This document shows positions 3,082-59,183 of a DNA stretch of 64,000 nucleotides, piece by piece. The notes beneath the pieces were generated by a model that was not told the DNA's origin, did no database searches, and saw only the letters and a list, made by a program, of their open reading frames with translations. The translations under genes and the position numbers were made by a program. The stretch is from the NCBI RefSeq assembly GCF_016432865.1, contig NC_067400.1, positions 629,424,001 through 629,488,000 of the forward strand. The letters run 5' to 3'. Source of the DNA: Antechinus flavipes (taxonomy: Eukaryota). Numbering within the stretch: the stretch's first letter is position 1; each line of letters starts with the position of its first letter.

Positions 3082-12178
<9,097 letters not shown>

Positions 12179-14144: not shown

Positions 14145-17100
14145 ATGTCGACTTCCTCGCTCCGCCGGCAGATGAAGAACATCGTCCACAACTACTCGGA
14201 GGCCGAGATCAAGGTGCGGGAGGCCACCAGCAATGACCCCTGGGGGCCCTCGAGCTCCCTCATGTCCGAGATCGCCGACCTCACCTACAACGTGGTGGCC
14301 TTCTCGGAGATCATGAGCATGATCTGGAAGCGGCTCAACGACCACGGCAAGAACTGGAGGCACGTCTACAAGGTCAGCGGCGGCCCGGGGGGCGCGGGGG
14401 GGCGGGGCGGGGCCGGCCTCCTCACCCGCCTCCCTCCCCAGGCCATGACGCTCATGGAGTATCTGATCAAGACCGGCTCGGAGCGCGTGTCCCAGCAGTG
14501 CAAGGAGAACATGTACGCGGTGCAGACGCTCAAGGACTTCCAGTACGTGGACAGGGACGGCAAAGACCAGGGCGTCAACGTGCGCGAGAAGGCCAAGCAG
14601 CTGGTGGCGCTGCTGCGGGACGAGGACCGGCTGCGGGAGGAGCGCGCCCACGCCCTCAAGACCAAGGAGAAGCTGGCGCAGACGGCCACCGGTGAGGGCC
14701 GCCCGAGGGCGGGGGCAGGACCCCCTCTGAGGGTGGGGAAGGACCCCCTCGGGCGGGGGAAGGACCCTGGGGGGGGGGGAAGGACCCCCTCTGAGGGCAG
14801 GAGGAGGCCCCCCTCGGGACGGGGGAAGGACCCCCTGGGGCGGGGGAAGGACCCCCTCTGAGGGCAGGGGAAGGACCCCCTCGGGCAGGGGAAGGACCCT
14901 CTGGGTGGGGGGGGAAGGACCCCCTCGGGCGGGGGAAGGACCCCCTGGGGCAGGGGAAGGACCCCCTCGGGCGGGGGAAGGACCCCCGAAGGCAGGGGGA
15001 AGCCCCCATAGGGCTGGGGGGACGCCCCCTCTGAGGGCCGGGGGAGGCCGGCAGACGAGCCCCCTTGCCCCTGTCTCCTCAGCGTCCTCGGCGGCGGTGG
15101 GCTCGGGGGCGCCCCCCGAGGCGGAGCAGGCCTGGCCCCAGAGCAGCGGGGAGGAGGAACTGCAGCTGCAGCTGGCCCTGGCCATGAGCAAGGAGGAGGC
15201 CGACCAGGTAGCGGGGCGGGCGCCCGCCGGGGGGCAGTGCTGCACGGGGGCTCGGCCGCCTGTCCTCCATCTCGCCTCCCGGGGCCCCCGCCTCTCGGGC
15301 TGCTCTTGGTCCTGCCCCCCGTCCTCCTGGCCCCCCCTCACGTTCTCTCTCCCCACCCCGCCAGCCCCCACCCTGTGGCCCCGAGGATGACGTCCAGCTC
15401 CAGCTGGCCCTTAGTTTGAGCCGGGAGGAGCATGACAAGGTCAGAGCCGCACCCCCCCGTCCCCGGGCCCCGGCCCCCGTCTGGTTCATTCCACCTCCCT
15501 CTCATCTTCGTCTGCCGGTCCCCTTTAAGGGGAGAGGGTTCTTGGGAAGCGGGGAGGCGAGCGTGTGCTTGGGGGCCGCTCAGGAGCCCCCCCCCGCCGG
15601 CTGCTGACCTTTCCCCTCCCTCTCCCCCCACGCCCGCCCCCCAGGAGGAACGCATCCGTCGGGGCGACGACCTGAGGCTGCAGATGGCGATCGAGGAGAG
15701 CAAGAGGGAGACGGGGGGCCAGGAGGAGGTGAGGGGGCCTGGGGAGGGAGGGGCCTGTGAGGGGCGCAGCCCCCTCCCCCCACTTCTCTCACCTCTGACC
15801 TCTTCTCTCCCCAGTCATCTCTCATGGATCTGGCTGACGTCTTCACGGCCCCCGCCCCCCCACCCTCCTCTGATCCCTGGGGCGGCCCCGTCCTTGCAGC
15901 TGTCCCACCCTCAGACCCCTGGGGGGGGCCCCCAGGACCCCCCGTCCCTCCCTCAGCTGACCCCTGGGGGGGTCCGGCTCCCACCCCTGCATCTGGGGAC
16001 CCCTGGAGACCTGCCCCACCCCCTGGCCCTGCAGCCGACCCCTGGGGGGGCCCCCCAGCTCCCCCTGCTGGAGAGGGGGGAACCCCAGACCCCTGGGGGG
16101 GAGCCGATGGTAAGTTCTGGCTCCTCGAGCCCCTGTTCCCTTTTCTTCCGGTTACAGAATTTCCCCTTGGGGGGAGGAGGTTGTGGGGGGAGGGGGCCCC
16201 GGCCTAGTAGCTCCCTCCCCCTCCTCCCCCCAGTGCTGCCCCTTGGCACACTCCCCTGATCTTGTTCTCAGGCCCCGGCGGGGCCCCAGGCAGCGGCCCG
16301 GCCGCCACCACTGACCCGTGGGCACCAGCGCCAGCCTTCTCGGACCCCTGGGGGGGCTCCCCGGCCAAGCCCAGCACCAACGGCACCCCAGGTATCGGGC
16401 CCTGCTCGAGCGTCCCGGGGGGCCCTGGGGGGGGGGGGGCGGGCCCCTGCCGGCAGGCTCCAGCGTGCCCTCTGCCCCTGCAGTGACCGCGGCCTTCGAC
16501 GCGGAGCCCGACGAGTTCTCCGACTTTGACCGCCTCCGGACCACGCTGCCCGCCTCGGGCAGCAGCACGGGTGAGGTGGCGCCCCTGCCCCGGGGGCTCC
16601 GGGCGGGGAGGGCGCCGCGGGCCGGGCCTGACCCCCCTTCTCCCCGGTCTCTTGGATTCCGCCCCCCAGGGGAGCTGGAGCTTCTGGCCGGAGAGGTCCC
16701 CGCGCGGAGCCCCGGCGCGTTTGACCTCAGCGGGGTGGGGGGCTCCCTGGCGGAAGCCGTGGGGAGCCCCCCCCCGACGGTGCCGCAGGCCCCCACGCCC
16801 CCTACTCGGAAGACGCCGGAGTCGTTCCTGGGGCCCAATGCCGCCCTGGTGGACCTGGACTCTCTGGTGACGCGGCCGGGGCCGGCCCCCCCGGGACCCA
16901 AGGCCTCCAACCCCTTCCTGCCCACTGGTGAGTGAGGGAGGGTGGCGGCTCCCGGGGGTGTGTGGACCCGGCCCCCCCCAGCCCCCGCCTCCACCCTCCC
17001 TGACCCTCGCCCTGCTGTCTCCTCAGGAGCCCCCGGCACAACCACTGGCCCGTCCCTCACCAACCCTTTCCAGCCTCCACCTCCAGCCACACTCACTCTG

Positions 17101-17241
17101 AACCAGCTACGTCTCAGCCCCGTGCCCCCCGGTCCCGGGGCCCCGCCGGCCTTCATCTCGCCCCTGGGGGGGGGCCCTGGCCTGCCTCCCATGATGCCCC
17201 CGGGACCCCCGCCCCCCAACACTAACCCCTTCCTCCTATAA
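14145..17241 (+). CDS. EPN1: Epsin-1 (ENTH, 3 UIMs, clathrin boxes, 8 DPW, 3 NPF), 10 coding exons, 578 aa
   Basis: Exons 14145-14372 (exon starts at 14052), 14442-14691, 15083-15207, 15365-15439, 15645-15728, 15815-16109, 16272-16391, 16484-16570, 16670-16927, 17027-17241; 1737 nt, all GT-AG. Peptides MSTSSLRRQMKNIVHNYSEAE, EEELQLQLALAMSKEE, LMDLADV, FSDFDRLR, LVDLD, TNPFLL*. Confidence 0.98.
14711..15040. repeat. G-rich minisatellite in EPN1 intron 3 (about 21-24 bp unit ggggaaggaccccctcgggcgg / ...ctctgagggca)
   Basis: Roughly 13-14 imperfect tandem copies fill most of the intron. Confidence 0.9.
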
Positions 17242-17582
17242 CCGGGTGGGGGGGAGGGGGACGCCCACCTCCTCTCGCCCTCCAGGAGATCAGTATTGTG
17301 AGTGCATGTGAAAGGGGGGTCCCCTCCCTCCCCCTCCCCCCAGCCTCAGCCCCACCCTGACCCGGTCACACTACACCCTCTCCCCAGCCCCCTCCTGGGA
17401 CGGGAGGGGGGCTCGGCGGGCAGGGGGACCCTCTATCCGGAGGCATTAGATGGGGCCGGGGCACTCGGGCACCCCTCCCCGACTTCCTCCAGCCTCGAAT
17501 CCCTCCCCTCCAATCAGTGTTGGAGCCCTGATCTCCCCTCCCCCCAGTGACTGTCCCTGGTGATCACTCTTCTGACCTCTGT

Positions 17583-35116: not shown

Positions 35117-38100
35117 ATGGAGCAGCCCCCAGAGAGCGGTGAGTGGCTCGCCAGGCTTGGCCCCCCTTTTCTCCCCAGTCTCTGGGGGCCTTCTCTGCCT
35201 TGTACCCTTTTCTCCCCAGACTGGGGAGGTTGTCTCCATCCTGTATCCCCTTCTCTCCCCAATCTTGGGGGCCTCCTCCGCCCTGTACCCCTTCTCCCCC
35301 AGTCTGGGGGCCTCTATCCTGTGCTCCCTCCTCCCTAGTCTCTGGGGGCTTCCCTCCTCTGCCTTGGGGGCCCTTGTTTCTCAGCTTTGCTCTTCTGTAT
35401 GGTGTGGTCATAGCTTAGAGGCTCTTTGGGGGGGTGGCACTTTGGGCCCTGCTCTCTGCGGGTACAGAGTGAACCCTCTTGCCTCCTGGGCTGGGTCATG
35501 CCCAGAGGTGGGATGGCCCGAAGGGAGCACTGCAGTGACTGACTGTCCCTAATTCCCCATGGGGCTCCACCAACAATGCCCCCCGTATATGTCTGTTCCT
35601 GACATTTTTCACCTTATTCTTGGTGATTCAGAGCTTGCTTTCATGTGGTTCCCCCTTCTCCCCCCCATTTGTTGGTGGGATCTGAACCCTGGTCTCTCTG
35701 GCTTTGGGTCTGGATGCTTGTCACTTTGTATCTCATCCTGCCTCACTGACCATGAGGGAGCTCGCTGAAAGAGCTGACGGGCACTGGGTCGAATGGAAGG
35801 GGGCCCCCCCGGGATGGGGAAGGTGTGGCGAGACCCCGACCGTCAGTGACCTTTGTTTGGTCCACAGAGGCCGCTGAGATGCGGGGACGGATTGGAGCCA
35901 GCCCGGTAGAGAAGGTCATTGAGCCGGAGGAGGACTCAGGTGAGTGGGGCCCCTTGGCAGGATGGGGGAGCGCAGCAGATGGGGGCAGGCTGCAAGTGTG
36001 GGCAGTGTTGTGCTCAGCCAGCTCCGATGGCTGCTTTTCCTTCCATTAACAACCATTCCTTATTTACCCTTATTCGTGCTAATTGCCTAATGTGAATGTG
36101 AATCCTAATTTGGTCCTCTTAGTGCCGTTTGTCCTTACTACCTCGAGTAGTACTATGGCCATTATGACCATGAATTTCCATGACTACTCACTGCCTCTAC
36201 CACCACCTCATTCCACCAGTAGCTACTCCCGCTGCTCTTAGCCACCACCATGACCACTTCTTATAATACTGCCACCCTTACCACCTATTACTGTCCCAAC
36301 AACTACTAAGTGCTATCATTGCCACCTCTCACTGCTAACTCCGAGCGTTAGTCCTACTGAGCGCTCTTCACTTCCACTTCCTGCCCCTAGTACCTTTAGT
36401 AACCCCAATCCCACTAGCCAACTACTAACTGCCACTGAACACAGTAGAATTAACTGCTCTAACTACCATTGCTACTATATTTAGTACCATGACTAACTAC
36501 TATTAGTAGTAATATTACTAACTCTTGACTGTCCCACCTACTTAGTATCACCAGGAACGCCATTACCACCAGTGACTACTGTTACGACCACCATTACTAT
36601 TACCTAATACCACGACCAACTACTGTTACTTCTTTTAACTACTCTCCTCTCTCATAGCTCCATACTGCTATAATACCCCTACTTACTACTACCATTCTTA
36701 TCGTCCCTTACTGCCACTGTCACTTAACTGTCACCTCGCAAAGTACGACCACTACTGTTAATACTTTTAACTACTCTTCTCTCCCACTACTCCATGCTGC
36801 TGAGTGACTACCACTTCATACCAGTACTAATAGTAATTAGTAGCAACTCTTACCTAATGCTCCTAGCTCCTATCACTAGTAACACCATTATTACCTACTA
36901 CTAACTGCCATTCTTACTGTCATGTAGCACAAAACTACTACTACTGTTACTACTTTTCACTACTTTTTTCTCCTACTACTCCATACTGCTGAGTGACTTA
37001 TCACTTCATATCAGTACTACTAGTACTATAACTTTTATTACTTGCAATTCTTACCTACTGTTCCTAACTCCTTTAATTAGTAACACCATCACTACCTACT
37101 ACTGTCTGCCATTGTTTCTGTTACTCAGCACAACTACTGCTATTGTTATGACTTTTAAGTACTCTTCTCTCCATACTGCTGAGTGACTATCACTTCATAC
37201 TAGGACTAACTACTGTTAGTAGCAACTCTTACCTGCTGCTCCTAGTTCTATCACTAGTAGCACCATTACTACCTACTACTAACCACCATTTTTACTGTCA
37301 TGTAGCACAAAACTACTACTACTGTTACTACTTTTAACTACTCTCCTCTCCCATAGCTCCATACTGCTACAATACCACTACTTACTACTACCATTCTTAT
37401 CGTCCCTTATTGCCACTGTCACTTAATTGTCACCTCGCAAAGTATGATCACTACTGTTACTACTTTTAACTACTCTTCTCTCCCACTACTCCATGCTGCT
37501 GAGTGACTACCACTTCATACCAGTACTAATAGTAGTTAGTAACAACTCTTACCTGCTGCTCCTAGCTCCTATCACTAGTAAAACCATTATTACCTACTAC
37601 TAACTGCCATTCTTACTGTCACTTAGCAAAGTACTACTATTTTTACTACTTTGAACTACTCTTCTCTCCATACTGCTGAGTAGCTACCATTTCATATCAG
37701 TACTAACTACTGTTAGTAGTTAGTAGCAACTGTGACCTGCTGCTCCTGTCACTAGTAACATCATCACTACTTACTACTAACAGCCTTTTCACTGTCCCCT
37801 AGTACAACTACTATAACTACTATCGCTTTTACTTAGTACTGCCACTGACTATTTTGGCTGATGCTTCTACTCACTTCCACTCCCTTGGACCACTAGTACT
37901 AACTCTAGCATTATCTATTGGCTACAGACTAGTAAGAGTAGTGCCTGCTGCCTCCAGTCTTGAGCTCTGCCCACTGTCCTCTCTGGCCAGCCCTCTGGCT
38001 GAGCCTTTCCCTAGCATCCCTGGGACGAGCCCCCACAAGGGGCAGGAACCAGAGGGTGGAGATGTGGCTGGGGTCCTGGGGATCCTTTCATCCAGCACTT

Positions 38101-41100: not shown

Positions 41101-44100
41101 TAAATAAAAACCTGTAATTAAAAAAAAATTTAAAAAAAAGATTTTCCACTCAAAAAAAAAAAAAGAGCCATATTCATCAGACTTGATTATGGTAGAGCCT
41201 TGTTGCCGTGTACAATGATCTCTGGTCCTGTTCATTTCACTCAGCATCAGTTCATGTAAGTCTCTCCAGACCTCGCTGAAATCCTCCCACTGGTCGTTTC
41301 TTACGGAACAATAATATTCCATAATATTCATATACCAGAACTTATTCAGCCATTCTCCAATGGATGGGCATATATTCAGTTTCCAGTTTCTTGCCCACTA
41401 CCAAAAGGCTGCCACAAACATTTTTGCACATGTGGGTCCCTTTCCCTCCTTTAAGCTCTCTTTGGGTTAGAGGCCCAGTAGAAATACTGCTGGATCAAAG
41501 GGTATGCACAGTTTAATAACTTTTTGAGCATAGTTCCAAATTGCCCTCCAGAATGGTTGGATCTGTTCTCCACTCCACCAACAATGCATCAGTGTCCCAG
41601 TTTTCCCCATGTCCCCTCCAAAATTCATGACTGTCATTTCCTGTCATCTTAGCCAATCAGAGAGGTGTGTAGTGCAATCTCAGAGTTGTCTAATTTGCAT
41701 TTCTCTGATCAATAGTGATTTGGAACACCTTTTGAAATGGGTAGAAATAGTTTCAATTTCTTCTGAGAATTGTCTGTTCATATCCTTTGACCATTTATCA
41801 ATTGGAGAATGGCTTGAATTCTTATAAATTTGAGTCAGTTCTCTGTATATTTTAGAAAATGAGGCCTTTATCAGCAACATTGGATGTAAAATTTTCCCCC
41901 TCAGTTTTCTGCTTCCCTTCTAGTTTTGGCTGCATTGGTTTTGTTTAATTGAATATAATTGAGATTATCCACTTTGTATTTCATCACGTTCCCTAGTTCC
42001 TGGCCTGTGCATTGTAGAATTCACCCCCATGGAGGCCCCTAGATCTCAATCCTGCGGTCCTGGCCCTCTGCTCTTGGGACTTGAGTGGAACATGAAGGCT
42101 ACTTCAGGAAAGCCCTACCCCGCCGCCACCCGTTAACCCTTGTTTCTCCGGCTTTTTTCATGACAGATGACAGGAGGAGATACAGAGCCTGGATGGCGGA
42201 GAAATTTAGTTCCTTAAGGGCTGGAGACTCTTGGCCGGGAGAGCGGGAGAACTTCCTGTACGGGCCCACCACGCTGCTGTTCTCCCGCACCTGCGCCAAG
42301 GTCCGAGTGGTCATCGGAGAAGAGGGTTCCGAGCTCCCCCCTGGCGAAGGGCCACCCTTCAGCGAGATCCCCGGCCAGGCCGGGCAGCTGGCGGCACTGT
42401 TCCAGCCCTACGAGAGGACTGACCGGCGACCCAACACCGTGGTCCTGCAGGGGCCCATGGGCATCGGCAAGACCGTGCTGGCCAGGAAGCTGATGCTGGA
42501 CTGGGCCCACGGGCACCTCTGCCGGGACGTGTTCCAGTACGTCTTCTACTTCAACCTCGGCGACATGGACGGGACGGCGGAGAAGAGCATGGCCGAGCTG
42601 ATCTCCGGAGAGTGGCCCAGCCCGCCGGTCCCCGTCTCCGACATCCTGTCGCAGCCCCAGAACCTGCTGTTCGTCCTGGACGGCTTGGAGGAGCTGAAGC
42701 CCTTCCTGGACGGGCCCGAAGCCGAGCTGTGTCGCGACTGGAACGAGCCCCGGCCGCTGGCCAGCCTGCTGCAGGGGCTGCTCCGGAGAACCCTGCTGCC
42801 CGAGGCCTGCCTGCTGCTGGTGGTGCGGCCCTCGGGCTGGGCCCGCCTGGCGCGCTGGCTGGGCTGCCCCCAGCTGGTCGAGGTCCTGGGGCTGTCCAAG
42901 GCCGACCGGGAGGAGTACTTCCACCGCTTCTTCGGGGACCGGGCCAGCGCGCGCGCCGCCCTGGCCACCGTGCGGGACAACGAGACGCTGGCCACCCTGT
43001 GCCGCTCGCCGCTGGTCTGCTGGCTGATCTGCACGGGCCTGAAGCAGCGGCTGGATGACGGGCAGGACCTGAGCCAGGGCCCCCTGACCGCCACGCGCCT
43101 CTACGTGTCCTACGTGACCGGGCTGTTCCGCGGGCGCGCCGCCCCCCAGGAGAGCCAGCTGCGGGCTCTGTGCCGCCTGGCGGCCGACGGCGTGCTGGCC
43201 CACGCCACGGGCTTCGACACCAGCGACCTGCAGCGGCACATGCTGACCCCGGCCGACCTCGAGCCCTTCCTGAACACCCACATCATCCTGGGCCGCGCCG
43301 GCGGCTACGCCTTCCTCCACCTGACCCTGCAGGAGTTCTTCGCGGCCCTGTACAGCGCCATGGAGGTGACCCGCAGCCCCTCGGCGGCGCACTCGGTGCA
43401 AGACCTGACCACCGAGCTGGAGAAGTACTCGGGCGTGGACACGAGCTTCCTGAGCCTGGCCGTGCACTTCCTCTTCGGCCTGCTGAACCCCGAGTGCGCC
43501 CGGCTGCTGGACGCCGAGCTGGGCTGCCGCCTGTCGCCCCAGCTGCGGCGGGACCTGCTGCTGTGGGCCGCCGTGTTCAGCGGCTCGGCCGCCCCCTCGC
43601 TGCGCGCCCTCTCGCTGCACCACTTCTTCTTCAGCCTCTACGAGACGCAGGACGCGGCCTTCGTGGAGGAGGCCATGGACCACTTCCGGGACCTGCAGCT
43701 GGTGCTCTGGAGCAAGGTGGACCTGCTGGTGTCGTCCTTCTGCCTCTGCCACTGCCGCCGGCTCGAGAAGCTGGTGCTCCACCTGCAGAGGGAGGTCTTC
43801 CACGAGCAGGACCCCGACGACCCGGAGTCACCCGCGGAGGCCGAGGCTGGGTGAGCGCGGGCGGCCTGGCGGGCGGGAGGCCGTCCTAGAGTGGGGCACC
43901 TCCCCCTAGAGTAGTGGGGCTCCTCCCCCCAATATGATGGGGCTCCTCTCCCTAGAGTGGTGGGGCTCCTCCCCCTAGAGAGGTGGGGCTCCTCCCCCTA
44001 GAGTGGTGGGGCTCCTCCCCCTAGAGTGGTGGGGCTCCTCCCCCTAGAGTGGTGGGGCTCCTCCCCCTAGAGTGGTGGGGCTCCTCTCCCTAGAGTGGTG

Positions 44101-47100
44101 GGGCTCCTCCCCCCAATATGATGGGGCTCCTCCCCCTAGAGTGGTGGGGCTCCTCTCCCCAATATGATGGGGCTCCTCTCCCTAGAGTGGTGGGGCTCCT
44201 CCCCCTAGAGAGGTGGGGCTCCTCCCCCTAGTGTGGTGGAGCTCCTCTCCCTAGAGTGGTGGGGCTCCTCCCCCTAGAGTGGTGGGGCTCCTCCCCCCAA
44301 TATGATGGGGCTCCTCTCCCTAGAGTGGTGGGGCTCTTCCCCCTAGAGAGGTGGAGCTCCTCTCCCTAGAGTGGTGGGGCTCCTCCTCCTAGAATAGGGT
44401 CCTCCCCCTAGAATAGGATTCTTCCCCCTAGAGTGGGGCATCTCCCCCTAATATGATGGGGCTCCTCCCCCCCTTAATATGATGGGGCTCCTCCCCCTAG
44501 AATAGGGTCCTCCCCGTAGAGTGGGGCTCCCCGCAGTGGCTTTGGGACCTGGCCCGGGCCTCCCCCAGCCGCTTTCCAACTGTCCCTTTGTCCTTCGTCC
44601 AGGCCCCAAGCTTTGGACCTCATCGCCTCGCGCTGGAAGGCGCTGTACACCGTGCTGAGCACCAACGCCACCCTGCGGGAGATGGAGCTGAGCTTCTCTT
44701 CCATGAATGACCTCTGCATGAAGTGCCTGAGTGACCAACTGAGCCATCCCGACTGCCGCCTGCACACCCTGAGGTGAGGGGGCCGGGGAGGACGGGGGAC
44801 CCTGGGGAGGATGGGGGACCCTGGGGAGGACAGGCCCAAAGCTGGGCTTGACCCAAAAAAACCATGCGGGACCCTCAGAGAGAGCCCACTCAGTGAGTGA
44901 GGGAGCTGAGGATGGAGCCAGCCAGTGTAGACAGCTTTCCTAGGAGTTGGCGGGGCATAGAGTGCGATAGCTTGGGGGGGCAGCTTTAAAGATTGGCGAA
45001 TTCCCTGGGCATCCACACCAGTCATTTTGGGGGACCCTCCTTTTTCCTTCTCCCTGGAATTGCCACCTTCGGAATTTCCCATCCCTCCTGGGGTGAGTGT
45101 GCAAGATTTTAGTCAGAGGCTTTCTGTGGAAGCCTCCGTTCCTTCTTCGTCAAACAAGGGATCCCAGTAGTGCCCACCACCCAGGGGTGGGTGTGAGGAA
45201 GTGGGGGGGGAAGAGTATTTGTAAAGGGCTTTGAGAACCTTAAATGACTATCAGTCCTCCCTCCCTTATCTCNNNNNNNNNNNNNNNNNNNNNNNNNNNN
45301 NNNNNNNNNNNNNNNNNNNNNNNNNNNNNNNNNNNNNNNNNNNNNNNNNNNNNNNNNNNNNNNNNNNNNNNNNNNNNNNNNNNNNNNNNNNNNNNNNNNN
45401 NNNNNNNNNNNNNNNNNNNNNNNNNNNNNNTCTCTCTCCCCTCCCTCTCCTCCCTCCCTCTTTCTCTCCCTCCCCTCCTTCCTCCTTCCTTCCTTTTCCC
45501 CATCTTCCTTGTCTCTCTTCTAGCTGTTACCTGATCTACCAGTAGCTTTGGGCCGAGCCCCAAACGAGATGAGTGGGGCTCCTGAAGGGGGGTGGGCAAT
45601 GTTGGGGAACAATGGCCACTCTGGGTGGGGCCCTGGCGGAGGCCGAAAGGAACAAAGGGCCTCCTCGGGCCTCCCTCCCCGCAGGATCAGGCAGACCGCC
45701 TTTGTCCCCTTTGCCTGTGGAGACTTCCCGCTGGCTCTCATCGGGCACCAGCATCTCATATGCCTTGACCTGGATCTTCAGCTGGGGGATGATGGGATGA
45801 AGCTGCTGTGTGAGGCTTTGAGACACCCCCAGTGTAACCTCCAATATCTGAGGTGAGTCTTCCTCAAAACCCTGTCCCTCCCCCCCTTCCCCGTGCCCTT
45901 TTTTGGATGGGGGAAGCACCCATGATTTGCCAGCTGTGGCTCCTTAATGGGACCAATGATGGAAGAACAGTGGGTGATGGCGAAAGGAAGGCCGATCTCA
46001 CCTCAGGACGCGGAGCACCCCGGGCCAGAAGCCACCCTGCAGCGTTCTCCCCAGTGCTCTTGCGGGGACCCGCTGGGGCTGAGGATGAACTCAATGGTGG
46101 CACAGAGTGGGGGCTTAGAAATGACTGCCAAGGGCAGCCGGCCGGTGCAGCGGATGGGGTACCAGCCCTGAGGTCAGGAGGACCTGGTTCAGATCCCACC
46201 TCAGAGGCTTAACATTTCCTGGCTGTATGACCCTGGGCGAGCCACTTAACCCCAGTTGCTTCAGGGGAAAAAACTGCTCTTGCAAAGGCCTTCTCAGGCC
46301 TCCCTTCACCCGTAATCGGGGAGTCACTGGGCTCTGGGCTATGCCTGGCATTTTGGGAGCCTGCCCGAAGCCTCCCTACCTGAAGCCTCCCTGCCCTCGG
46401 CCCCAGGACCGAAGAATTTGACAGGACAGGACTTGAGTAGCTGGGGTGGGCAGGAGACTAGAGCAGGCAGGCTCCCACCTGCTAGCGCTGTTGTGGTGGT
46501 CTGGGGAGCAAGTAGGAAGGCCTGGGGAGGGGAGTTGCAGGAAGGGGGTGAATTTGAGGGGTGCTGCCAAGGCGAGATCCTCATATGGTTATGAGGTGAG
46601 TTGCACAGTGGCGCGCCTCAGTCGGGGGTGTCCTTGGCATCAGGAGGGGAGAAGAGGGAGGAGTCGGTCCGAAGGAGAGCATTTTGTTTTGGGCGTGTGG
46701 AGGCTCAGCTGATTGGGGCAGTTGAGGAGGCTCAGGTGATTGGGGCAGTTGGAGAGGCTCAGGTGATTGGGGGCAGTTGGGGAGAGGCCAGAGGAGGTCT
46801 GCAGGAGTGGGACCTGAGAGTTCTCAGCTGAGAGGGGATCGCCCAATCCATGGGACTGATGGGATAGCGGGAGGAGCCCCGAGGGGCACCCAGGGTCAGA
46901 GGGCCCGACCGGGGAGGAGCCAGCAAAGGAGACAGACATCGGGATAGGGCGGTTTCAGTGGATGGCGCTCCAGAGGGCAGGGAAGCCACAGGACCAGTTA
47001 TGGGACTGCAGGTCGGGGAGGTCTAGGTGCAGCAGGAGGAGGGAGAGGCTGAAGCTGAGCCGGAGAAGGGGGATGAGGGGTGGGATGGAGGGGCCGCCTC

Positions 47101-50100
47101 GGGAGAGGAGATGGGAGCCACGGAGCCATGGCACGGCCACGGCCTCTTGGGTGAATCGGGCTCGGAGCTGGGAGAGCGGGGCTTTGGAAGCGCCGCTGTG
47201 GAGAGTAAGGCCGGCCCAGGGTTGGCCGCGGCAGCGAGGGCCCAGCTGTTTAACAAGCGGCTCAGTCTGAATGGCGGCAGGATGTAGGAGGGACCCTAGG
47301 AGGGATCTGAGAAAGGGGATTAATAACTTAAGAATGAGGCACCAAGAGGTCACAGTGGGGGGAGGAGAAGTCACGGAGGGGCTGGGCAGTTATGGAGAGG
47401 CAGAGGGAGCCCATAGATGGGGGTTGCCTGAGGGAATTCAGCAAGAGTGAGCATGGAGATGGTCCGTGTGTGAGGCAGAATAGCTCATTGGTTAGGGTGT
47501 TTGAGGGGAGAGTCTGTGTATGAGTCTCCTAGGAGGAGGAGGGCAGGAGTTGGGGAGGAGAGAAATATTGGGAACCAGGGACCAAACACAGGGAGGGAGG
47601 GGAGACTCGGCTCCAGGACTGGGATTGGGCAGGAGCTACGAGGAGCAGGAACCTCAGAGGCTACTGAGTGACGGGGGAAGGGGGGCTCTGGAAGCAGCAG
47701 TGGGGAGCCTGGGCCAGTGAGGGGAGGGGCAGCCAGGGAGGTTCCGTCTGCAGGGAGGGCCAGGTTTCGGAAGGAGGGAGTACATGGAAGGAGGACGAGA
47801 GGAATAGATTTAAGCTGAAGGTGGTTAATGGAACAGGCACAAAGCCTGGGGACTTTGGGGAGGGAGAGTGGGGGGTTGTGGGAAGTCGGGTGGGTGGGGT
47901 GATGGGGGTACATCTGGGTCATAATCTGCAAGGGCTGAGAGTCACTGGGATGGGAAGGGTGTGACCAGTCCCTCCCCATCGAGCGGAGGCAACCCTGGGA
48001 GCCCCCCCGGGGATTTCGGGTCGGCGCAGGAGGCGGAAGGTGCCTTGGCTGCGCAGGTGGAAGATGCCCAGCGCCGCTCATGCCCCTGGCTGCCTCCCGT
48101 CAAGGTCACGCGGTGCCCGGCGGGAGATGCAAGGCTCAGGGCACCCTGGGTGCGAGGGCTTCTCGCTGCAGAGGTGGTGAGGAGGGGGCAGCAGGAAGCG
48201 TCGGGGGCAGGGAACTGAGGCTGAAGTCTGCGTTCAGATTCAGCTTTGACTGGGCGCATCGCTCTTGGGGGACCCGAGCCGAGGACCGTGTGGTGTCCCT
48301 CTCGGCCCACCCCGGGGTGCTCGGCTGCCTCCTCCCTCCTTCGGGAGTCTTCCTTCCTCTCCCAGCCTTCTCTCTCAGCTTCCCAGCTCTCTCCAGTGTC
48401 TCATTAGTCCCCGCTGGCTCCCCCCATCCCCCCCATGCGGTCATGGCCAGGTCCCCCCTCCTGCCAGTGCTGCCCTTTCTCCTGCTCTCCTGCCCAGGAC
48501 AGTTGTTCTCTGTTCAGAAAATAGAAACATGGGGTGGGGGGTGAGGAAAGGGGGAGGAGGGTGGGACAAGGAGAGACCCCAAGGGCAGAGGAAGAGGAGA
48601 TGGAGGAGCTGACGGGGACAGGCAGGACAGAGACATGAACAGAACCTCAGACACGCAGATGGGAGACGCAGCAGGACGGGAGGGGAAGGAGGAAGAGTGG
48701 GGAGGGGAGGGGACGGGACAGGGAGGGGAGGGGGGAGGCGGGCGGCCCCGTGACGCTCACTGCTCGCCCCCCAGGTTGAAGAGCTGTGCCCTCACCAAAG
48801 CTTGCTGCCCAGACCTGGCCCTGGCCCTCACCTGCAACCAGAGCCTGAGCCACCTGAACCTGGAGGGGAATCAGCTGCTGGACAGCGGCGTGCAGGTGCT
48901 GTGTGAGGCCCTGAACCGGCCCGAGTGCCACCTCCAGAAACTGGTGTAAGTAGCCGCTCCCCCGCTCCCGTACCGGGGGCAGGCTGGGGGGCCGCGGGAC
49001 TTCTCGGGGTGACTGAGATTCCCTCGCCTGGGAAATGGCGCCGTGGTGGGCATCCGGGAGGAACGGGATAAGGCTGGGGAAGGCAGTGAGAGCTGTGGTC
49101 AGACTTGGAGGGCCAGCACACGGAGGAGGGGCCAGCCTTGCCCAGCTCCAGGGGCACTTATGGTGGACGGGAGGTGATGGCGGAAGGGGGAGGGTGTGAT
49201 GGCAGACGGGGGGTGATGGCGGACACATCTGGCGATGGTGGCTTTGGGTCGGCACTCGTAGACACCGAGTAGTGCAGTGGTTCACCCTGTGAGGTTGCAG
49301 AGGGCAGTCGAATTACATGAGCCCTGTTATGTCTCGATGGTCTTAAACATGCATAGAAATAGGGAAAGACTGCACCGGGGAGGGCAGGAGAGGAAGGGGG
49401 AGGGAGGTCGGGGCAACGGCGTCTCACGTACTCGGGGTGAGCGAGTAGACGTCGCTGTGAATGGAGGGGAACGGGTGCGGGGAAGCCTGACCCGCATCGA
49501 ACCGGTCAAAGGAGACCCTAAGCAGAAATGTTTCCCTCAGCAGAGAAGTGGGAAGGAAGAGAAGAGACAGGGAATGGGGGTGGGTTAAGCCCTAAGCAGA
49601 GCAAACGGAAGAGCCGCAGACCTTTAGAACGGGCCTTTTTTGGTGGCCAAGAGCTGGAGAAGGGGCCGTCACGTTTGGGAAATGACTGAACAAGAGCCTC
49701 CGAATGTTGAGGGGCACACTGGTGCCGGGAGCAGGCAGGAAGGGAGTGGCTGCAGGGCAATCTGGGCAGCTTCCGTGCACAGAACCAGGGGGCAAAGTCC
49801 CTGCGCTTTGGGGGAGCCTTTTGCGTCCCGATCGCACGATTCCAGGAGACTGATGCTGAAGCCTTTTGTGGCCGACGTGGACGGGCGCTGTGCTCCACGG
49901 TCGGGTTTGGATCGGGGCTTTGGTTTTACTCCCTGTTTTTGAGGGGGAGTGCAGGCGAGGGAGAAGAGAAGGGAGGTTTTTTGCCCATTAAAAAAAAGTT
50001 AAGAAACAGAAACAAACCAGGATGGATGGCCCAGGATTGCAGAATAAAAATGTCCTGAAAAAGGGAAGAGCGGCACAGAGCCACAAACGTTGGCCCGTAA

Positions 50101-53100
50101 ACTTGGCTAACTTGAGGACAGGAAGCGGTGATGGAGGGAGCTGGGCCGATCGGGCCCCCGGACTCGCCGCCTTCTCCCCCGGAGCCGGGCCGATCGGGCC
50201 CCTGGACTCGCCACCTTCTCTCCCGGAGCCGGGCTGATCGGGCCCCCGGGCTGCATTCTCTATAAGCTGTCTGGCGCTCTCCTTGTGGAGGAGATGGAGC
50301 CGTGTGCGCCGGATGCCGTCCCAGCCCATTGGCGATTGGATGGACGGGGCTCCCAAGATCATGGACTTTCTGGGTTGTCTGAGCCTCTAGTCTTAAAGAT
50401 GGAGAAACCGAGTCCCAGAAAAGTGCCATCCAGGATCCACAGCCAGGGATCGCGCTTGGGAATTCCTGACTGCCGAGATCTTGTGCCGCATTGAGGGGCT
50501 CAGCCCTTGGGAGGGGGGAGGGCCCTCCTGGGAAGCTAGCTGAAGTGAGTCCAGAGGACGACAGCCTGGATGGGGGGAGATTGGGGCAGTGGGAGGAAGT
50601 GGCTGATGGTAGCATCTGAGGGATCCTGTGTGGAGGAGGGGGTCGCACTTGTGTCTGACCCGAGAGGTGGGGGAAGTAGCCAAGGCAGGTCATGGACGTC
50701 GCAAGCTCCCCCTCTGCGGGGGACCCAGAGGTGGCTGCTTCGGGGGTGCCTCGATGGAGACACCGCTCCCCCCCTTTTGCTCCTTGCCTCTAGCCAGCCC
50801 CTTCTGTTCCTGTCTCCTTGTCCCTCCCCCATAGAAGGCCCGGGGTCATTTCCCACCTCTGTGTGTCCCCCCTCGCAGGTTGGCAGGATGCGGCCTGACC
50901 GACAGTGGCTGCCAGGATCTCTCTGCCACCCTCACCGCCAGCCGGAAGCTCACCCACCTGTGCCTGGCCCACAACAGCCTTCGGGACGAAGGCCTAAAGA
51001 TTCTGAGCACAGCTTTGAAATGCCCCGATTGCCCCCTCCAAAAACTGACGTAAGGCCTCAGGGATGTGCCCTCCAGGGTCCCTGGGTGGGGGCCTTCAGG
51101 AGGGTCCTTGGGGGGGCCTTCAGGAGGGTCCTTGGGAATGGGAGCAGGGGCTCATACCCTTAGTTACTTGGACTCATCTCTGGTAATGGGGCAAGTGCTT
51201 CTGGGTCCTTATGTGGGAGCTGCCCTAGTATGCTGGAGCACACTGAGGAGGAGGAGGGATGGGAGGAGAAGAGAGGGAGGAAGGAAATAGAGGGAGGAAG
51301 GAGAGGAGGGAGGGAGGGAAAGAATAGGACCAGAGGAGACGCAGAAGCCAGAGGCCTCTCCAAGAGGGAAGGAGGGGGCAGGCCCCAGGCTGAGGGGGAC
51401 GCAGTGCCCCCAATGGGGAGGAGCTAGGAGGTGGCCCCTGTCCACGCCCTTCCCAGCCGGGGGGGCACCGGGAGGCAGAGGGGTGGGCACCCCGAGGTCG
51501 GCCACGGCCTGCCCTTGCCCGGCTCGCAGCGTTCCTCAGCTTGGCGGGGGCAGGCGGGGGCAGGCGGGATTCTCCATCTCCTGTGGCCCTTTCAGCACAT
51601 TCTGGCCCTCGTGGGCCCCCAGCTCTCTGTAGCCGACACCGGTGCTGCCTGGGTCCCCCTCGTAAGGAGCCCCTGGCTGTCCAGAGCACCTCAGGAAGGA
51701 GCCCGTCTCCCTTTGCTGGCTGGGGGGCCCTCCCTGCCGTGTGGGTGGGGGCGCACCAGGGCCCACATGGACATGCCTTTGTTCTAGTGAAGCGCAGTGG
51801 CAGAGGGCAGAGGGCAGAGGGTGGGCCCCCCCCATGGCACCCCTGCTTCAGCCTAAGGCTGAGTGGAGGGGGGTTGCTGAGGGTTGGGTTGGGGGCCAGC
51901 GTAGGCCCGATTGCTGGGGGTGGGGCCTGAGTGAGTGCCCCCTCCCCACTATGGGACTGCTCAGTCCCCCGGGGTGGGGGCCGCAGGGACGCCGGGCTCA
52001 GTGGAGGTGAGCGCGCGTCCTGGCCCGGCCTGCAGGTTGTGGAGCTGCGGGCTCACCGCCGCGGGGTGCCAGGATCTCGCCACGGTGCTCCTCAACAACA
52101 AGAACCTGACTCACCTGGACCTGGGGGAGAACGACCTCGGGGATGACGGCATGAAGCTGCTGTGCGCCGCCTTGGCGCAGCCGCAGTGCAGCCTTCAAGC
52201 CTTGGAGTAAGCCCTTGCCGTCTTCAGCACTTACGTAGCACCACTGCATGCAGGGGCTGTGGGCGGGGGTTACCGCGGCCTCGTCGTGTGCCCCTGTCCT
52301 CGGCAAGGGAGCTCCGGCCACGACCCCGGAGGGGGGGACCGAGGCAGAGGGGAAGGGCTCGGGGGCTCGGCCTCGGGCTCCCCCTCACTCCGGCCTCTCC
52401 CACAGCGTCTTGGTCTGCTTCCTCACCGAGGCCTGTTGTCAGGACCTCGCGGACGCCCTCATCCTCAACCGGAACCTGCACAGCCTGAACCTGGGTCACA
52501 ACGCTCTCAAAGATGAGGGGGTCAAGCTGCTCTGCAAGGCCCTGAGACACCCCGACTGTCAGCTCCAGAGGCTCGGGTACATCAGGGGGGCCGAGGGACC
52601 ACGGCGTGGTTCTTGGGGGGGGGCGGTAGGACTGCAGCATGTTTCTGGGGCCACTAAGACTGTAAACTCCTGGGGGGGGGCGAGGCTCATACTTGGCACA
52701 GGCCTTTGTGTTGGCTGGTAGCCGTCCTCCATTCCCCAAGAGGGCCGACATGGCGTCGCTTTGTGAGTCGGGTTACCGTGTGTCCGGGGTGGCCGATTGG
52801 GCCATCGCGGGCTTTGGAACCTTGGGTCACAGCTTGGACACGTGGTCCCTATGGAGGCTGTGGGGCTGGAGCCTTAAGGGAAGGAGGGGGAACCGTGGGC
52901 CTCTGGTAAGGAGGGGGAAGGCCCAAGGGCATCCAAGGTCACGCGATGGCGAGAGGGCAGAAACGATGGGCAGCCCCGCTAGCTGAGCGTTCCAGTGGGA
53001 GCCATGTTAACTCAAGGGGCCGTGGAGTCAGCTGGCTAGAGGGAGGCTCTAGGGAGCGCACAGAGGGCTGCGATCTGCACTTGGGAGTGGAGTGTGTGAG

Positions 53101-54123
53101 CCCTCCCAGGGTGGTGAGAGAGAAGGGGCCAAGCACGGGGCGAGAGGAGGAGAAGCTGAGGACGAGGGCCAGAAAGCCATCTGTGACCTTGGATGAGGGA
53201 ACCTTGGGAGCACAGGGAGCGGGGCCTCTGGCTGGTTCACCCCTTCTCTGCGGAGCCCCCAGCCGGTCTGCACCCTCTACCCCGGGCCTCGGGGCCTCTG
53301 CGCCCTCTACTCACGCCGGCCACGCTCACGGCCTCGCCTGTGTCCCTCGGGCAGGCTGGAGAGGTGCCAGATCAACACCGCCGGCTGCCAGGACCTCTCC
53401 TCGGTCATCCTCTGCAATTCGAGGCTGAAGAGTCTGAACCTGGCCCAGAACGCCTTGTGGGACGAAGGGGTGAGGCTGCTGTGCGAGGCCCTGGAGCGGC
53501 CTGAATGCGGACTGCAGCTCCTGGCGTAAGTGCCCAGCGAAGGCGCGGCGGTGGCGGGCGGACCCTGCTTGGACTCTGTCTCCCTGCCCCAGTCTAATTA
53601 GTGTTCCCTGGCCATTTTTGTGCACCCCAGAGGTGTCTCATTAATGTTCCCCGGCTGGGCCCAGTGTTACCTCAGAGGTGTCTCATTAATGTTCTCCAAC
53701 TGGCCCCCAGTGTACTTGGAGGAGGTGTCTTAATTAGTGTTCCCCGCCCGGCCGGTGCACCCCAGAGGTGTCTCATTAATGTTCGCTGGCCATTTTTGTG
53801 CACCCCAGAGGGGTCTAATGTTCCCTGGCTGGGCCCAGTGTTACCTCAGAGGTGTCTCATTAATGTTCCCCAACTGGCCCCCAGTGTACTTGGAGGAGGT
53901 GTCTTAATTAGTGTTCCCCGCCCGGCCGGTGCACCTCAGAGGTGTCTAATTAGTGCTCCCCGCCGGCCCCCTCCCCCCCAGGCTGTGGAAGGAGGCGTTC
54001 AGCGAGGACGCGCAGCGGATGCTGAAGGCGGCCGAGGAGAACCGGCCACAGCTGGTCATCACTGGCGACTGGTACAGTCACGAGCCCGAGGAGTTCGGCT
54101 TTTCCTGGTGGCTGGAGACCTGA
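35117..54123 (+). CDS. NACHT-LRR protein of the reproduction-related NLRP group (NLRP5/NLRP14-like), apparently without a PYD; about 1037 aa (1050 with an optional microexon)
   Basis: Model: 35117-35138, 35868-35939, (39317-39355 optional), 42167-43850, 44603-44773, 45685-45852, 48775-48945, 50879-51049, 52036-52206, 52406-52576, 53355-53525, 53982-54123. All GT-AG, phases 1-1-(1)-2-2..., no stops. Confidence is high from the NACHT exon onward and moderate for the N-terminal exons. Confidence 0.85.
35160..35350. repeat. About 40 bp minisatellite (about 5 copies) in NLRP intron 2
   Basis: Unit approximately ccccttctccccagtctgggggcctcctctgccctgta. Confidence 0.7.
36130..37930. repeat. G-poor (ACT/TAC)-derived low-complexity region with higher-order about 130/190-bp units
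   Basis: Recurring blocks such as tactcttctctcccactactccatgctgctgagtgactaccacttcataccagtactaatag at about 36770 and 37470. Confidence 0.85.
38050..38770 (-). mobile_element. Probable ERV LTR remnant
   Basis: Plus-strand gtttattg (minus AATAAA) and LTR-like composition; termini not resolved. Confidence 0.35.
40320..41140 (+). mobile_element. L1 3' fragment (ORF2 C-terminus, 3' UTR, A-tail)
   Basis: atgctcaaaaagttatcaaactgtgcataccctttgatccagca...; A-rich tail at about 41103-41140. Confidence 0.88.
41200..41995 (-). mobile_element. L1 ORF2 C-terminal fragment
   Basis: Reverse-complement match to L1 ORF2 ([14 protein letters not shown]...; KNSSHSPIDKWSKDMNRQF). Confidence 0.88.
42167..43850 (+). 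CDS. NLRP NACHT exon (FISNA-like start, Walker A/B, HD1, WHD, HD2)
   Basis: DDRRRYRAWMAEKF; GPMGIGKT; LLFVLDGLEEL; LLPEACLLLVVRP; CRSPLVCW; FLHLTLQEFFAALY; FLFGLLN; SLYETQD. Phase-1 acceptor tgacag and phase-2 donor GG|GTGAGC. Confidence 0.95.
43886..44532. repeat. 23-bp VNTR (tagagtggtggggctcctccccc), about 27 copies, filling the intron after the NACHT exon
   Basis: Direct periodicity, with a variant unit aatatgatggggctcctc. Confidence 0.95.
45273..45430. other. Assembly gap (158 N) within a CT-rich tract of an NLRP intron
   Basis: Run of n. Confidence 1.
46131..46272 (+). mobile_element. WSINE1-type SINE, GC-shifted
   Basis: gggcagccggccggtgcagcggatgg...aggtcaggaggacctggttcagatccc...cacttaaccccagttgcttcagg-A tail. 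Confidence 0.8.
47000..47870 (-). mobile_element. Decayed L2 LINE (endonuclease and adjacent region)
   Basis: Minus-strand peptide IFLSSPTPALLLLGDSYTDSP resembles the L2 endonuclease segment FLSSPTPALILGDFNIH. Confidence 0.55.
53590..53960. repeat. About 44-bp tandem repeat (about 9 copies, with a higher-order duplication) in the last NLRP intron
   Basis: Core (ca)gaggtgtctcattaatgttccc / gaggtgtcttaattagtgttccc. Confidence 0.9.
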
Positions 54124-55779: not shown

Positions 55780-57432
55780 TTCCCTATTAGCCATATTGTG
55801 GAAAAACCTCAAAGCAAAAAGCTATCAATATTCTATATTAAAATATATATTATATAGAATTAAAACATATATTGAAAATTATAATAAAGTTATGGGAACG
55901 ACCTGCTAGTGGCTGCTTGGGGATATCAGCCATGTTGTGGAAAACCCCAAAGCAAAAAGTTACTGATATTATGTATCAATATATATTATACATAACTAAC
56001 ACATATATGAAAAATAATGTTACGGGAACCACCTGCTAGTGGCTGCTGGGGATATGAGCCACATTGTAGAAAATCCCTAAAGCAAAAAGTTAATATTATG
56101 TAACTATATATTAAGTAATGTTTTTTTGGCGTTTTCTTGAGGTCTCTGGGTAGTCTTTCAGCAGAGAAAGCACCACAAGAATAACCAGAGGTTCAAGTCC
56201 AAAAGTGTCTGTCTCCTTCACCTGGTGCTCGTGGCCTTCAGAGGGGATGTAGTTTCAGTGGAGAAAATGCAGGAGGACGGGCCAGCATGGCGGTGGGAGA
56301 TGAAGTGGGTCTGGTCCCCGGCTTGTGCTTCAGCTTCCAGCCACCACGAACGTGGACGATGGAATGAATCTGTCTCTGCCTCCTTTGGCTGAGTTTGTCT
56401 CAGCTTATATTCTCCAGCATATGAGTATGAACCAATCATGTCACTAGGAAACCATTATTTGTTGTAAGATTAAATCAATCATACCGAACTTAGAGAACTA
56501 TTAATGACCGTGCTAAACCACACAACCATTGTCTCATCAATTCCACTCAATTAGCACCTTGTAAGAATCCTTGTTTCCACTTCAGAGTTCTGGCCCATAG
56601 CAATATTATACATAACTGACTCATATATTAATAATAAATGTTTTGGGAACCACCTGCTAATGGCTGTTGGGGTTATCAGCCATGTTGTGGACAACCCCAA
56701 AGCAAAAAGTTATTATGTATCAATATATATTATACATAATTAACACATATATTAAAAATAATAAATGTTACTGAAATCACGTGCTAGGGGCTGCTGGGGA
56801 TTATTAGCCACGTTGTGGAAAAAACCCCAAACAAAAAGTAATTATTATATATTAAAATATGTGTTATATATAATTAACACATATATTAAGAATAAAGTTA
56901 TGGGAACCACTTGCTAGTGGCTGCTGGGGATATCAGCCATGTTGTGGAAAACTCCAAAGCAAAAAGTTATTATGTATCAATATATATTGTACATAATTAA
57001 CACATATATTAAAAATAAATGTTACAGGAACCACGTGCTAGTGGCTGCTGGGGATATTAACCACATTGTGAAAAAAACTCCAAACAAAAATTATTATATA
57101 TTAAAATATATGTTATATATAATTAACACATATATTAAAAATAATAAATGTTACAGGAACCACGTGCTAGTGGCTGCTGGGGATATTAACCACATTGTGA
57201 AAAAAACCCCAAACAAAAATTATTATATATTAAAATATATGTTATATATAATTAACACATATATTAAAAATAAAGTTATGGGAACGACTTGCTAGTGGCT
57301 GCTGGGGATATCAGCCATGTTGTGGCAAACTCCAAAGCAAAAAGTTATTGATAATATGTATCAATATATATTATACATAACTAACACATATACTAAAAAA
57401 AAAAATGTTACGGGAACCACCTGCTAGTGATT
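55780..57432. repeat. About 125-130 bp satellite, about 9 units, interrupted by a solo LTR
   Basis: Unit gggaaccacctgctagtggctgctggggatatcagccatgttgtggaaaaccccaaagcaaaaagtt plus an AT-rich spacer. Confidence 0.92.
56114..56602 (-). mobile_element. Solo ERV LTR with 6-bp TSD (ATATTA)
   Basis: TSD at 56108-56113 and 56603-56608. Shares tcactaggaaaccattatttgttgta and the terminal block with the LTR at 60148. Confidence 0.8.
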
Positions 57433-59183
57433 GCTAGGAATCTAGTTCTGATCAGCAGGAGGGATCCCTTTTATGTGAGAGGATGATAATGATACAAGGA
57501 GACTGGGGGGCAGGAATAGGCTCTGGACTCCCTCTTCTGGCCTCCCATTTATTCCATTCCCAATTCACAAGCAACATCTGGTCAGGAAAGGCTGATTTGC
57601 AATTCAGGGGTGTTGGCATTCACAGCTGGGGGGGCCTTGGGAGAACCGATGGCCCCTTAATGGAGCAGGCCTTTTAACCCTTTACAGGCTTTCTGGGTTT
57701 CGCACTTGGGAGAGTGATCCTTAAGAGTGAAAGTCTGCTTCAGTCTGCCTTGGAGCCCATGAGGCACAAGAGTCTTGGGAAATATCCATTGCGTTGCTAA
57801 GAGCTAAGTGACCGGTAACTGGGACTGTCCAGTGACCGCTGGTTCTGTTCCCTTGCTGCTGTCTAGTGGGACAACTCCTGAGCCCACAGTGGTGGTGGGG
57901 TGCTCTTGGCAGATGCTGGAGGGGGTTGGCTATTTTCAGCTCAGTTTATAGGTGAGGAAACTGGAGCAAACCCAGTTAGGAGTTGGCCAGGGTCCCGCCC
58001 AGCTTAGGAAGTGACCCGAAAAGAGGAGTCTTGGCGATCCCAGTCCCCAACTCACTCTGTGCACTGCCCCCAGCAGCCACCTCCTCAGGCTTCTCTGAGC
58101 ACATGCTCCCCAGCATTTCTTATGACACAATCATGTGCCACAACCTACTCTGCTGATTGACACTCGTCCCTTCAGTTTTCAATTCTTTGCCACCACAGAG
58201 CAACTTGCTAGAACTCCTTCCGTACCTTCCTCGGGCCTTTTCCTTTTCTTTGGGTTAGGGATGTAGGAACAGTATCCCTGAGTCTTAGGACCCATAGACT
58301 TATTTCCAAAGTGCTCTCCAGAATGTTGGTGATATATAAAAATGCTGAGGATTTATATGGGTTTATTTTGTATCCTGCAACTTTGCTAAAGATGTGGATT
58401 ATTTCTAATAGCTTTTTAGTAGACTCTCTGGAGTTCTCTAAGTATACCATCATATCATCTGCAAAGTGATAATCTGGTTTCCTCATTACTTAAATTACTT
58501 TAATCTCTTTCCCTTTTATTGCCAAAGCTAGCAATTTCTAATACAATATTGAATAGTAATGATGATAGTGGACAACCTTGTTTCACTCCTGATTTTATTG
58601 GGAATGGTTCTAGTTTGTCCCCTTTACATATGATGCTTACTGATGGGTTTAAATAGATGCTACTCACTATTTTAAGAAAAAGTCCATTTATTCCTATACA
58701 CTCTAGTGTTTTTAATAGGAATTAGTGTTGGATTTTATCAAATGCTTTTTCTGCATCTATTGAGATGATCATATGATTTTTGTAGTTTGGTTACTGATAT
58801 AATCAATTATGCTCATATTTTCCTAATATTGAACCAGCCCTGCATTCCTGGTATAAATCCTACCTGGCCATGGTGTATTATCCTGGGGATGATTTTCTGT
58901 AATCTTTTTGCTAGTATTTAAGATTTTAGCATCAATGTTCATTAGGCAGATTGGTCTATAATTTTCTTTCTCTGTTTTCATCCTACCTGGTTTTAGGTAT
59001 CAGTACCATGTCTGTGTCATAAAAGGAATTTGGTAGGACTCCTTCAATTCCTGTTTTTTCAAATAGTTTATATAGCAATGGAATTAATTGTTCAAATAAT
59101 TTATATAGCAATGGAATTAATTGTTCTTTAAAAGTTTGGTAGAATTCACATGTAAATCCATCTGGTCCTGGGGATTTTTTCTT

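Follow-up and report, generated by a model that had tools for sequence, protein, structure and literature searches.

A 64,000-nucleotide stretch of the Antechinus flavipes genome (contig NC_067400.1, positions 629,424,001 to 629,488,000; hereafter the window) carries one NLR gene downstream of EPN1. This gene is probably the dasyurid copy of a single marsupial gene that shares an ancestral gene with the placental reproductive NLRP clade. When the NACHT region, the leucine-rich repeat (LRR) region with its tail, individual sequence characters and synteny are considered together, the most likely position of the marsupial gene is with the reproductive NLRPs. A preliminary description of the window had proposed a pro-ortholog of the reproductive NLRP cluster found beside EPN1 in placentals. 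NACHT and LRR trees, approximately unbiased (AU) tests and synteny support this idea, but its scope has to be widened: the gene corresponds to the reproductive clade as a whole and not to the EPN1-side cluster alone. That clade includes NLRP14 and NLRP2/7, which are located elsewhere in human (NLRP14 at 11p15.4; table in PMC13076529).

Orthologues with 71–85% identity were found in Dasyuromorphia, Diprotodontia, Peramelemorphia, Microbiotheria and Didelphimorphia. These scored at least 1631 bits, compared to at most 979 bits for the next best matches, and the best full-length placental match was NLRP14 (42% identity). Searches with the NACHT exon gave a different ranking. Among PDB structures, the highest score was for NLRP3 (372 bits), followed by a fusion construct with a truncated name (331), NLRP9 (299), NLRP1 (275), NLRP4F, NLRP14, NLRP7 and NLRP2 (approximately 267–270), NLRP6 (255) and NLRP5 (226–241). 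In a large protein collection, three marsupial orthologues scored 1066–1124 bits, marsupial proteins named "NLRP12(-like)" approximately 400 bits and NLRP3 approximately 370 bits. This ranking looks like a grouping with NLRP3, but raw similarity favours slowly evolving relatives, and trees were therefore built.

An exhaustive representative search yielded 150 cluster representatives, and clades were named from the cluster members. In a FastTree analysis of 226 NACHT regions, the marsupial clade (stem 0.87) was sister to placental NLRP2/7, 4, 5, 8, 9, 11, 13 and 14. The main NACHT tree, computed with IQ-TREE from 78 rows under LG+C20+F+G4 with posterior mean site frequencies (PMSF), also placed the marsupial clade sister to all placental reproductive NLRPs (ultrafast bootstrap, UFBoot, 96; Shimodaira–Hasegawa-like approximate likelihood ratio test, SH-aLRT, 81). 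A larger clade joins the reproductive NLRPs to NLRP1 and to the marsupial and platypus "Nlrp-like" genes (SH-aLRT 99), and NLRP3 and NLRP12 fall outside it. The Nlrp-like genes carry NCBI names of the type NLRP12-like or NLRP3-like. Judged by these trees, many marsupial "NLRP12-like" names are misleading, since the Nlrp-like genes group apart from true NLRP3 and NLRP12.

We then compared placements of the marsupial clade in a single AU run, which combined regrafts onto 18 alternative branches of a fixed backbone with five partly searched constrained trees; the regraft design can slightly favour rejection. Placements with NLRP12 (p = 0.0008), placental NLRP3 (p = 0.0012) and marsupial/platypus NLRP3 (p = 0.0012) were all rejected, as was a tree constrained to unite the marsupial clade with NLRP3 and NLRP12 (p = 0.0036). 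Also rejected were positions with NLRP9 alone (p = 3e-5), NLRP4 alone (p = 2e-16), NLRP11 alone (p = 2e-5), NLRP4/9/11 (p = 0.011) and NLRP2/7 (p = 0.027). A position with NLRP5 was allowed (p = 0.20–0.25), as was one with NLRP8/13 (p = 0.086). For NLRP14 the outcome differed between the constrained tree (p = 0.084) and the regraft (p = 0.011).

The LRR region and tail gave a second, separate placement. This part of the protein can be aligned over its whole length with NLRP14 (51% identity over 426 amino acids) and with NLRP5 (40–42%). A quick PMSF tree of 57 such regions, seven of them from marsupial orthologues, placed the marsupial sequences inside the reproductive clade (SH-aLRT 85), grouped with NLRP14, NLRP5 and NLRP8 (SH-aLRT 88). 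In AU tests of this region the best placement was with NLRP14 (p = 0.72), closely followed by NLRP5+8 (p = 0.69), and a position sister to all reproductive NLRPs was not rejected (p = 0.136). Placements with marsupial Nlrp-like (p = 0.0024), NLRP4/9/11 (p = 0.003) and NLRP12 and NLRP3 (p = 0.00014; range 0.0001–0.0012) were rejected. A grouping with NLRP3/12, which the preliminary description had named as one of the outcomes that would overturn its proposal, is thus rejected in both parts of the protein (p = 0.0008–0.0036 for NACHT).

Two sequence characters are consistent with these placements, and both had been pointed out from the sequence beforehand. The tail encoded by the terminal exon runs on beyond the usual end in a GDWYSH-acidic-WW motif, and counterparts were found solely in NLRP5 (E ≈ 1e-8) and NLRP14 (E ≈ 4e-7), the two proteins that the C-terminus had been said to resemble. 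The Walker B motif reads DGLEEL and had been likened to that of NLRP4/8/13. Its D-to-E change is indeed common to NLRP4, 8 and 13, and to NLRP9 too, and occurs sporadically in NLRP2 and koala NLRP1. The change was absent from NLRP3, NLRP12, sauropsid and amphibian homologues, and marsupial Nlrp-like genes.

Gene order in the window, established from open reading frames (ORFs) and similarity searches, is U2AF2-EPN1-NLR, with all three genes on the + strand. In placental mammals, the EPN1 flank carries NLRP9/11/4/13/8/5 (PMC13076529), and the window gene therefore has the location expected for the reproductive NLRP clade. The conserved neighbourhood of NLRP14 was not found; U2AF2 and EPN1 adjoin the gene instead. 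The identity of EPN1 is supported by its ENTH segment, which scored 161 bits against epsin-1 structures and 59 bits against epsin-2/3. With 253 NLR proteins as tblastn queries, the rest of the window showed no further NLR coding sequence, and the 10 kb that follow the gene were likewise free of it. This agrees with the earlier reading of one NLR on the same strand 3' of EPN1, and no paralogue indicative of an already expanded downstream cluster is present within the window. In Gracilinanus, CCDC106 lies upstream of the orthologue, which confirms synteny on the CCDC106 side in didelphids. It should also be noted that the Gracilinanus protein model (P0304; locus L005, 10001-64516) has 1362 amino acids, extends over 54 kb and begins 2 kb beyond a gene adjacent to CCDC106. 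Its first 364 residues are non-NLR sequence, and the model looks over-extended or fused.

The NACHT exon matched the Pfam families NACHT (6.9e-45), NOD2_WH and NLRC4_HD2. As expected of the NACHT NTPase of an NLRP, Walker A (GxxGxGKT) and Walker B are intact, as are the sensor-1 Arg and the winged-helix His, so that the gene encodes a complete STAND ATPase module. The C-terminal LRRs are also present, encoded by seven exons of 168–171 nucleotides and followed by the tail exon, and LRR Pfam families are present on orthologues. An N-terminal pyrin domain (PYD), which is the remaining feature of the family, was not found in any frame of the window or in ten marsupial orthologue models (devil, dunnart, antechinus, wallaby, koala, glider, bilby, monito del monte, opossum and gracile opossum). 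Precomputed Pfam lists show PF02758 on none of these ten models. A tblastn search with the N-termini of 105 NLRPs recovered coding exon 2 and no PYD-like sequence in the interval from EPN1 to the NACHT exon. Over the window's 1718 six-frame segments, a custom PYD hidden Markov model built from 122 N-termini reached no better than E = 8.6, and it matched 0/10 orthologue models, compared to 287/411 proteins of the whole set; as a positive control, it recognised 151/253 proteins. One PYD-like tblastn match at approximately 62.5 kb on the minus strand was weak and within LINE-1-like sequence, and was dismissed.

In place of a PYD, the marsupial proteins begin with a short N-terminus (MEQPPES..., 31 amino acids) that is kept across Australidelphia and has the same beginning in Monodelphis. 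Placental reproductive NLRPs retain the PYD in the Pfam lists, so the domain appears most likely to have been lost on the marsupial stem. The window gene counts as an NLRP through its ancestry and not through its domain architecture.

Several observations weigh against common descent with the whole reproductive clade. The marsupial stem in the NACHT tree is long (0.9 changes per column), amino-acid composition is skewed, and NLRP3 tops the raw NACHT similarity (372 bits, against 299 for NLRP9, 269 for NLRP14 and 241 for NLRP5). The NACHT AU test allows positions with NLRP1 (p = 0.30), marsupial Nlrp-like (p = 0.14) and platypus Nlrp-like (p = 0.18), as well as a more basal position outside NLRP1, Nlrp-like and the reproductive NLRPs (p = 0.45). 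Support in the LRR tree consists of SH-aLRT values only (85–88), LRR repeats are hard to align, and the exact position of the marsupial gene differs between the NACHT and LRR trees. OOEP and KHDC3, partners in the subcortical maternal complex (SCMC), are regarded as restricted to placentals, and a full SCMC is therefore not to be assumed in marsupials. A possible but doubtful alternative is that co-orthology of the marsupial gene is limited to the NLRP14/NLRP5(/NLRP8) branch. Several reproductive lineages would then have existed before marsupials and placentals diverged, and all but this one would have been lost in marsupials. The LRR+tail tree and its AU values, the colinear LRR region and the tail common to NLRP5 and NLRP14 alone all agree with this scenario, and the NACHT AU test allows NLRP5 and, in the constrained tree, NLRP14. 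However, in the NACHT maximum likelihood (ML) tree the marsupial gene stands outside a group of all placental reproductive NLRPs (SH-aLRT 94), a regraft beside NLRP14 was rejected for the NACHT region, and the LRR region itself allows the sister position. The common LRR and tail features could also be ancestral states of slowly evolving members. The marsupial gene may be either sister to all reproductive NLRPs or nearer to NLRP14/5.

Two other origins would take the gene out of the reproductive clade altogether. Membership of the NLRP1 or marsupial-monotreme Nlrp-like lineage, with adjacency to EPN1 a coincidence, agrees with the permissive NACHT AU values listed above. Nlrp-like proteins are also the closest in the NACHT part by path length and BLAST, and a weak pre-NACHT similarity is restricted to these genes. 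We nevertheless consider this origin improbable, as the LRR+tail AU test rejects marsupial Nlrp-like, the reproductive grouping has a UFBoot of 96, and synteny, tail and Walker B point the other way. An NLRP3/NLRP12-type immune sensor or regulator that merely lost its pyrin domain would explain why NLRP3 and NLRP12 are the top PDB and database matches of the NACHT exon. In phmmer, query residues 25–28 onward align to NLRP3 from residue 132, in the FISNA region, and marsupial Nlrp12 is in the same chromosomal neighbourhood (PMC13076529). Despite these similarities, such an origin is very improbable: the AU tests reject it in both protein regions, the Pfam FISNA model (PF14484) was unmatched on the NACHT exon at E <= 0.01, and a dasyurid dN/dS (ratio of nonsynonymous to synonymous substitution rates) of 0.01–0.02 is unlike that of a pathogen-driven sensor. 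Descent from the ancestor of the reproductive NLRP clade therefore remains our preferred reading.

Selection on the gene was estimated with the Nei-Gojobori method on codons from the window and from orthologous loci (L002–L006). Among dasyurids, the window differs from Sminthopsis at 57 synonymous and 2 nonsynonymous positions (dN/dS 0.011–0.012) and from Sarcophilus at 45 and 3 (dN/dS 0.021–0.022). The corresponding counts are 121 and 88 for Monodelphis and Gracilinanus (dN/dS 0.23), 261 and 213 for the window and koala (dN/dS 0.21), and 239 and 337 for the window and Monodelphis (dN/dS 0.41). These ratios indicate purifying selection on a gene that is functional in all compared marsupials and unusually constrained in dasyurids, where such selection is very strong. 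The dN/dS among dasyurid genera is more than ten-fold below that between didelphids or between marsupial orders (0.21–0.41), a difference for which we have no explanation.

The predicted protein would bind nucleotide like other NLRPs. Since it has no pyrin domain, a canonical inflammasome role is unlikely; recruitment of ASC through PYD-PYD contact would be impossible. Rather than an inflammasome sensor, the protein would most likely be a nucleotide-bound scaffold, as NLRP5 and NLRP14 are in oocyte complexes and in cytoplasmic lattices. By descent, and given LRRs and a tail of the NLRP5/14 type, its most likely role appears to be a structural one, in germ cells or the early embryo. NLRP5, NLRP14 and NLRP4F are combined in solved oocyte assemblies, whose PDB entries are among the matches of the NACHT exon. 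Germ-line expression of the marsupial gene is an assumption of this proposal, made by analogy, and our literature search found no paper on its expression in oocytes, early embryos or germ cells.

A tentative extension is that the sole marsupial NLRP of the reproductive lineage lost its PYD before the marsupial radiation, yet has been tightly constrained, to an extreme degree in dasyurids. If the protein serves as a maternal scaffold in the oocyte or embryo, the ancestral job of the clade would need no pyrin domain and would predate the placental-only SCMC partners, and the one-gene marsupial system could be used to dissect that job. The topology tests in both protein regions indicate that the lineage of egg-expressed NLRPs is older than the marsupial-placental split and was single-copy at the EPN1 locus. 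With strong constraint and no pyrin domain in any marsupial order, the gene could be a simple model of a non-inflammasome role for a reproductive NLRP.

For the gene model, orthologue proteins from other marsupials were located in the window by tblastn, and splice sites were then read directly. The model comprises 11 coding exons that encode 1037 amino acids with a single terminal stop, and all internal boundaries are AG/GT. The product is 100% identical to the public Antechinus flavipes "NLRP14-like" model (P0294, 1037 amino acids), and differs from the Sminthopsis model at 2 residues and from the Sarcophilus (Tasmanian devil) protein (P0106) at 3/1037 residues. The preliminary description had the gene begin at 42167. 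This is correct as the start of the NACHT exon, whose acceptor AG ends at 42166 within an open frame of 42085-43854, but not as the start of the gene, as two small coding exons lie approximately 7 kb earlier. The sizes it gave for the LRR exons (171-168-171x5-terminal) hold throughout, all with AG/GT sites. For Petaurus, isoform X2 (P0003) lacks the last LRR exons as well as the conserved tail and ends in unrelated residues; this 3' end is probably alternative or mispredicted.

No exon is missing at the assembly gap in the window. The run of N is flanked by a donor GT at 44774 and an acceptor AG ending at 45684, and the reading frame is unbroken across the intron that contains it. Orthologues are continuous over the junction in tblastn alignments (e.g., P0002, residues 608 to 611), and the spliced product matches the public model exactly. 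Coordinates of all exons, the gap and the neighbouring genes are listed in the table.

Features of the window, in order of position (numbered from the first nucleotide of the window)
Feature	Position	Strand	Basis
U2AF2 exons, upstream neighbour	8100..12100	+	ORFs; RRM segment 11009-11134 against U2AF 65 kDa, 81 bits
EPN1 exons (ENTH exon 14145-14372 and downstream exons)	14145..17300	+	ORFs; ENTH segment match
Coding exon 1 (ATG, MEQPPES), 22 nt, in GC-rich island	35117..35138	+	N-terminus kept in koala, bilby, Dromiciops and dasyurid models
Coding exon 2 (acidic linker without pyrin domain), 72 nt	35868..35939	+	AG/GT sites; phase fits NACHT exon
NACHT exon, 1684 nt: pre-NACHT segment, NACHT, winged helix, HD2	42167..43850	+	Pfam; intact motifs
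LRR exon 1, 171 nt	44603..44773	+	tblastn, AG/GT sites
Assembly gap (N), in intron between LRR exons 1 and 2	45273..45430		exon coordinates
LRR exon 2, 168 nt	45685..45852	+	tblastn, AG/GT sites
LRR exon 3, 171 nt	48775..48945	+	tblastn, AG/GT sites
LRR exon 4, 171 nt	50879..51049	+	tblastn, AG/GT sites
LRR exon 5, 171 nt	52036..52206	+	tblastn, AG/GT sites
LRR exon 6, 171 nt	52406..52576	+	tblastn, AG/GT sites
LRR exon 7, 171 nt	53355..53525	+	tblastn, AG/GT sites
Terminal exon, 142 nt: NLRP5/NLRP14-type tail and stop codon	53982..54123	+	spliced model, tail search

Between EPN1 and the NLR gene lie a GC-rich tandem-repeat stretch and AT-rich repeats. Directly 3' of the EPN1 exons, a long GC-rich tandem repeat (18900-21900) yields open frames of 370–640 amino acids in several frames and on both strands. 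The sequence 3' of the NLR gene (56000-64000) is AT-rich, with minus-strand LINE-1-like ORF fragments and no gene.

The core hypothesis has already been published, and the present result is a confirmation whose added value is incremental. The gene annotated by NCBI as marsupial "Nlrp14" was described as located near marsupial Nlrp12, flanked by Epn1 and not grouped with NLRP14 (PMC13076529, J Mol Evol 2026, supplementary file 3). In that study it diverges before the reproductive NLRPs in the ML tree and groups with Nlrp5 in the neighbour-joining tree. It was named rNlrp-like and proposed as a reproductive NLRP in opossum, devil and koala, with the same argument from EPN1, and monotremes were found to lack a homologue (PMC13076529). 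According to the same paper, Duenez-Guzman & Haig 2014 had earlier examined reproductive NLRPs of opossum and platypus; marsupials were not included by Tian et al. 2009 (PMC2735741). Our additions are the topology tests in two protein regions, the tail and Walker B characters, the absence of the pyrin domain across marsupial orders, and the selection figures.

Compared to known genes, the window gene is closest to rNlrp-like (NLRP14 or NLRP14-like at NCBI), which is the same gene, flanked by Epn1 and placed before or among the reproductive NLRPs (PMC13076529). That paper is silent on the absent pyrin domain, on the characters in the tail and Walker B, on topology tests and on selection, and the window adds another dasyurid. 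Eutherian NLRP14 shares colinear LRRs and an acidic, WW-ending tail with the window gene. Unlike the window gene, it has a pyrin domain and is not beside EPN1, and monophyly of the two in the NACHT region is weak or rejected. The public name "NLRP14" appears misleading for the marsupial gene. Eutherian NLRP5 (MATER, the SCMC core) is located on the EPN1 side in placentals and has the tail motif and colinear LRRs, and a sister relation to it was not rejected by AU in either region. It differs in its pyrin domain and in a long extension at the N-terminus, and its NACHT similarity is the lowest of the NLRPs. NLRP3 and NLRP12 have the highest raw NACHT similarity, conserved ATPase motifs and an alignment that reaches into the pre-NACHT segment, whereas the window gene has neither a pyrin domain nor a Pfam FISNA match and is phylogenetically excluded from their group.

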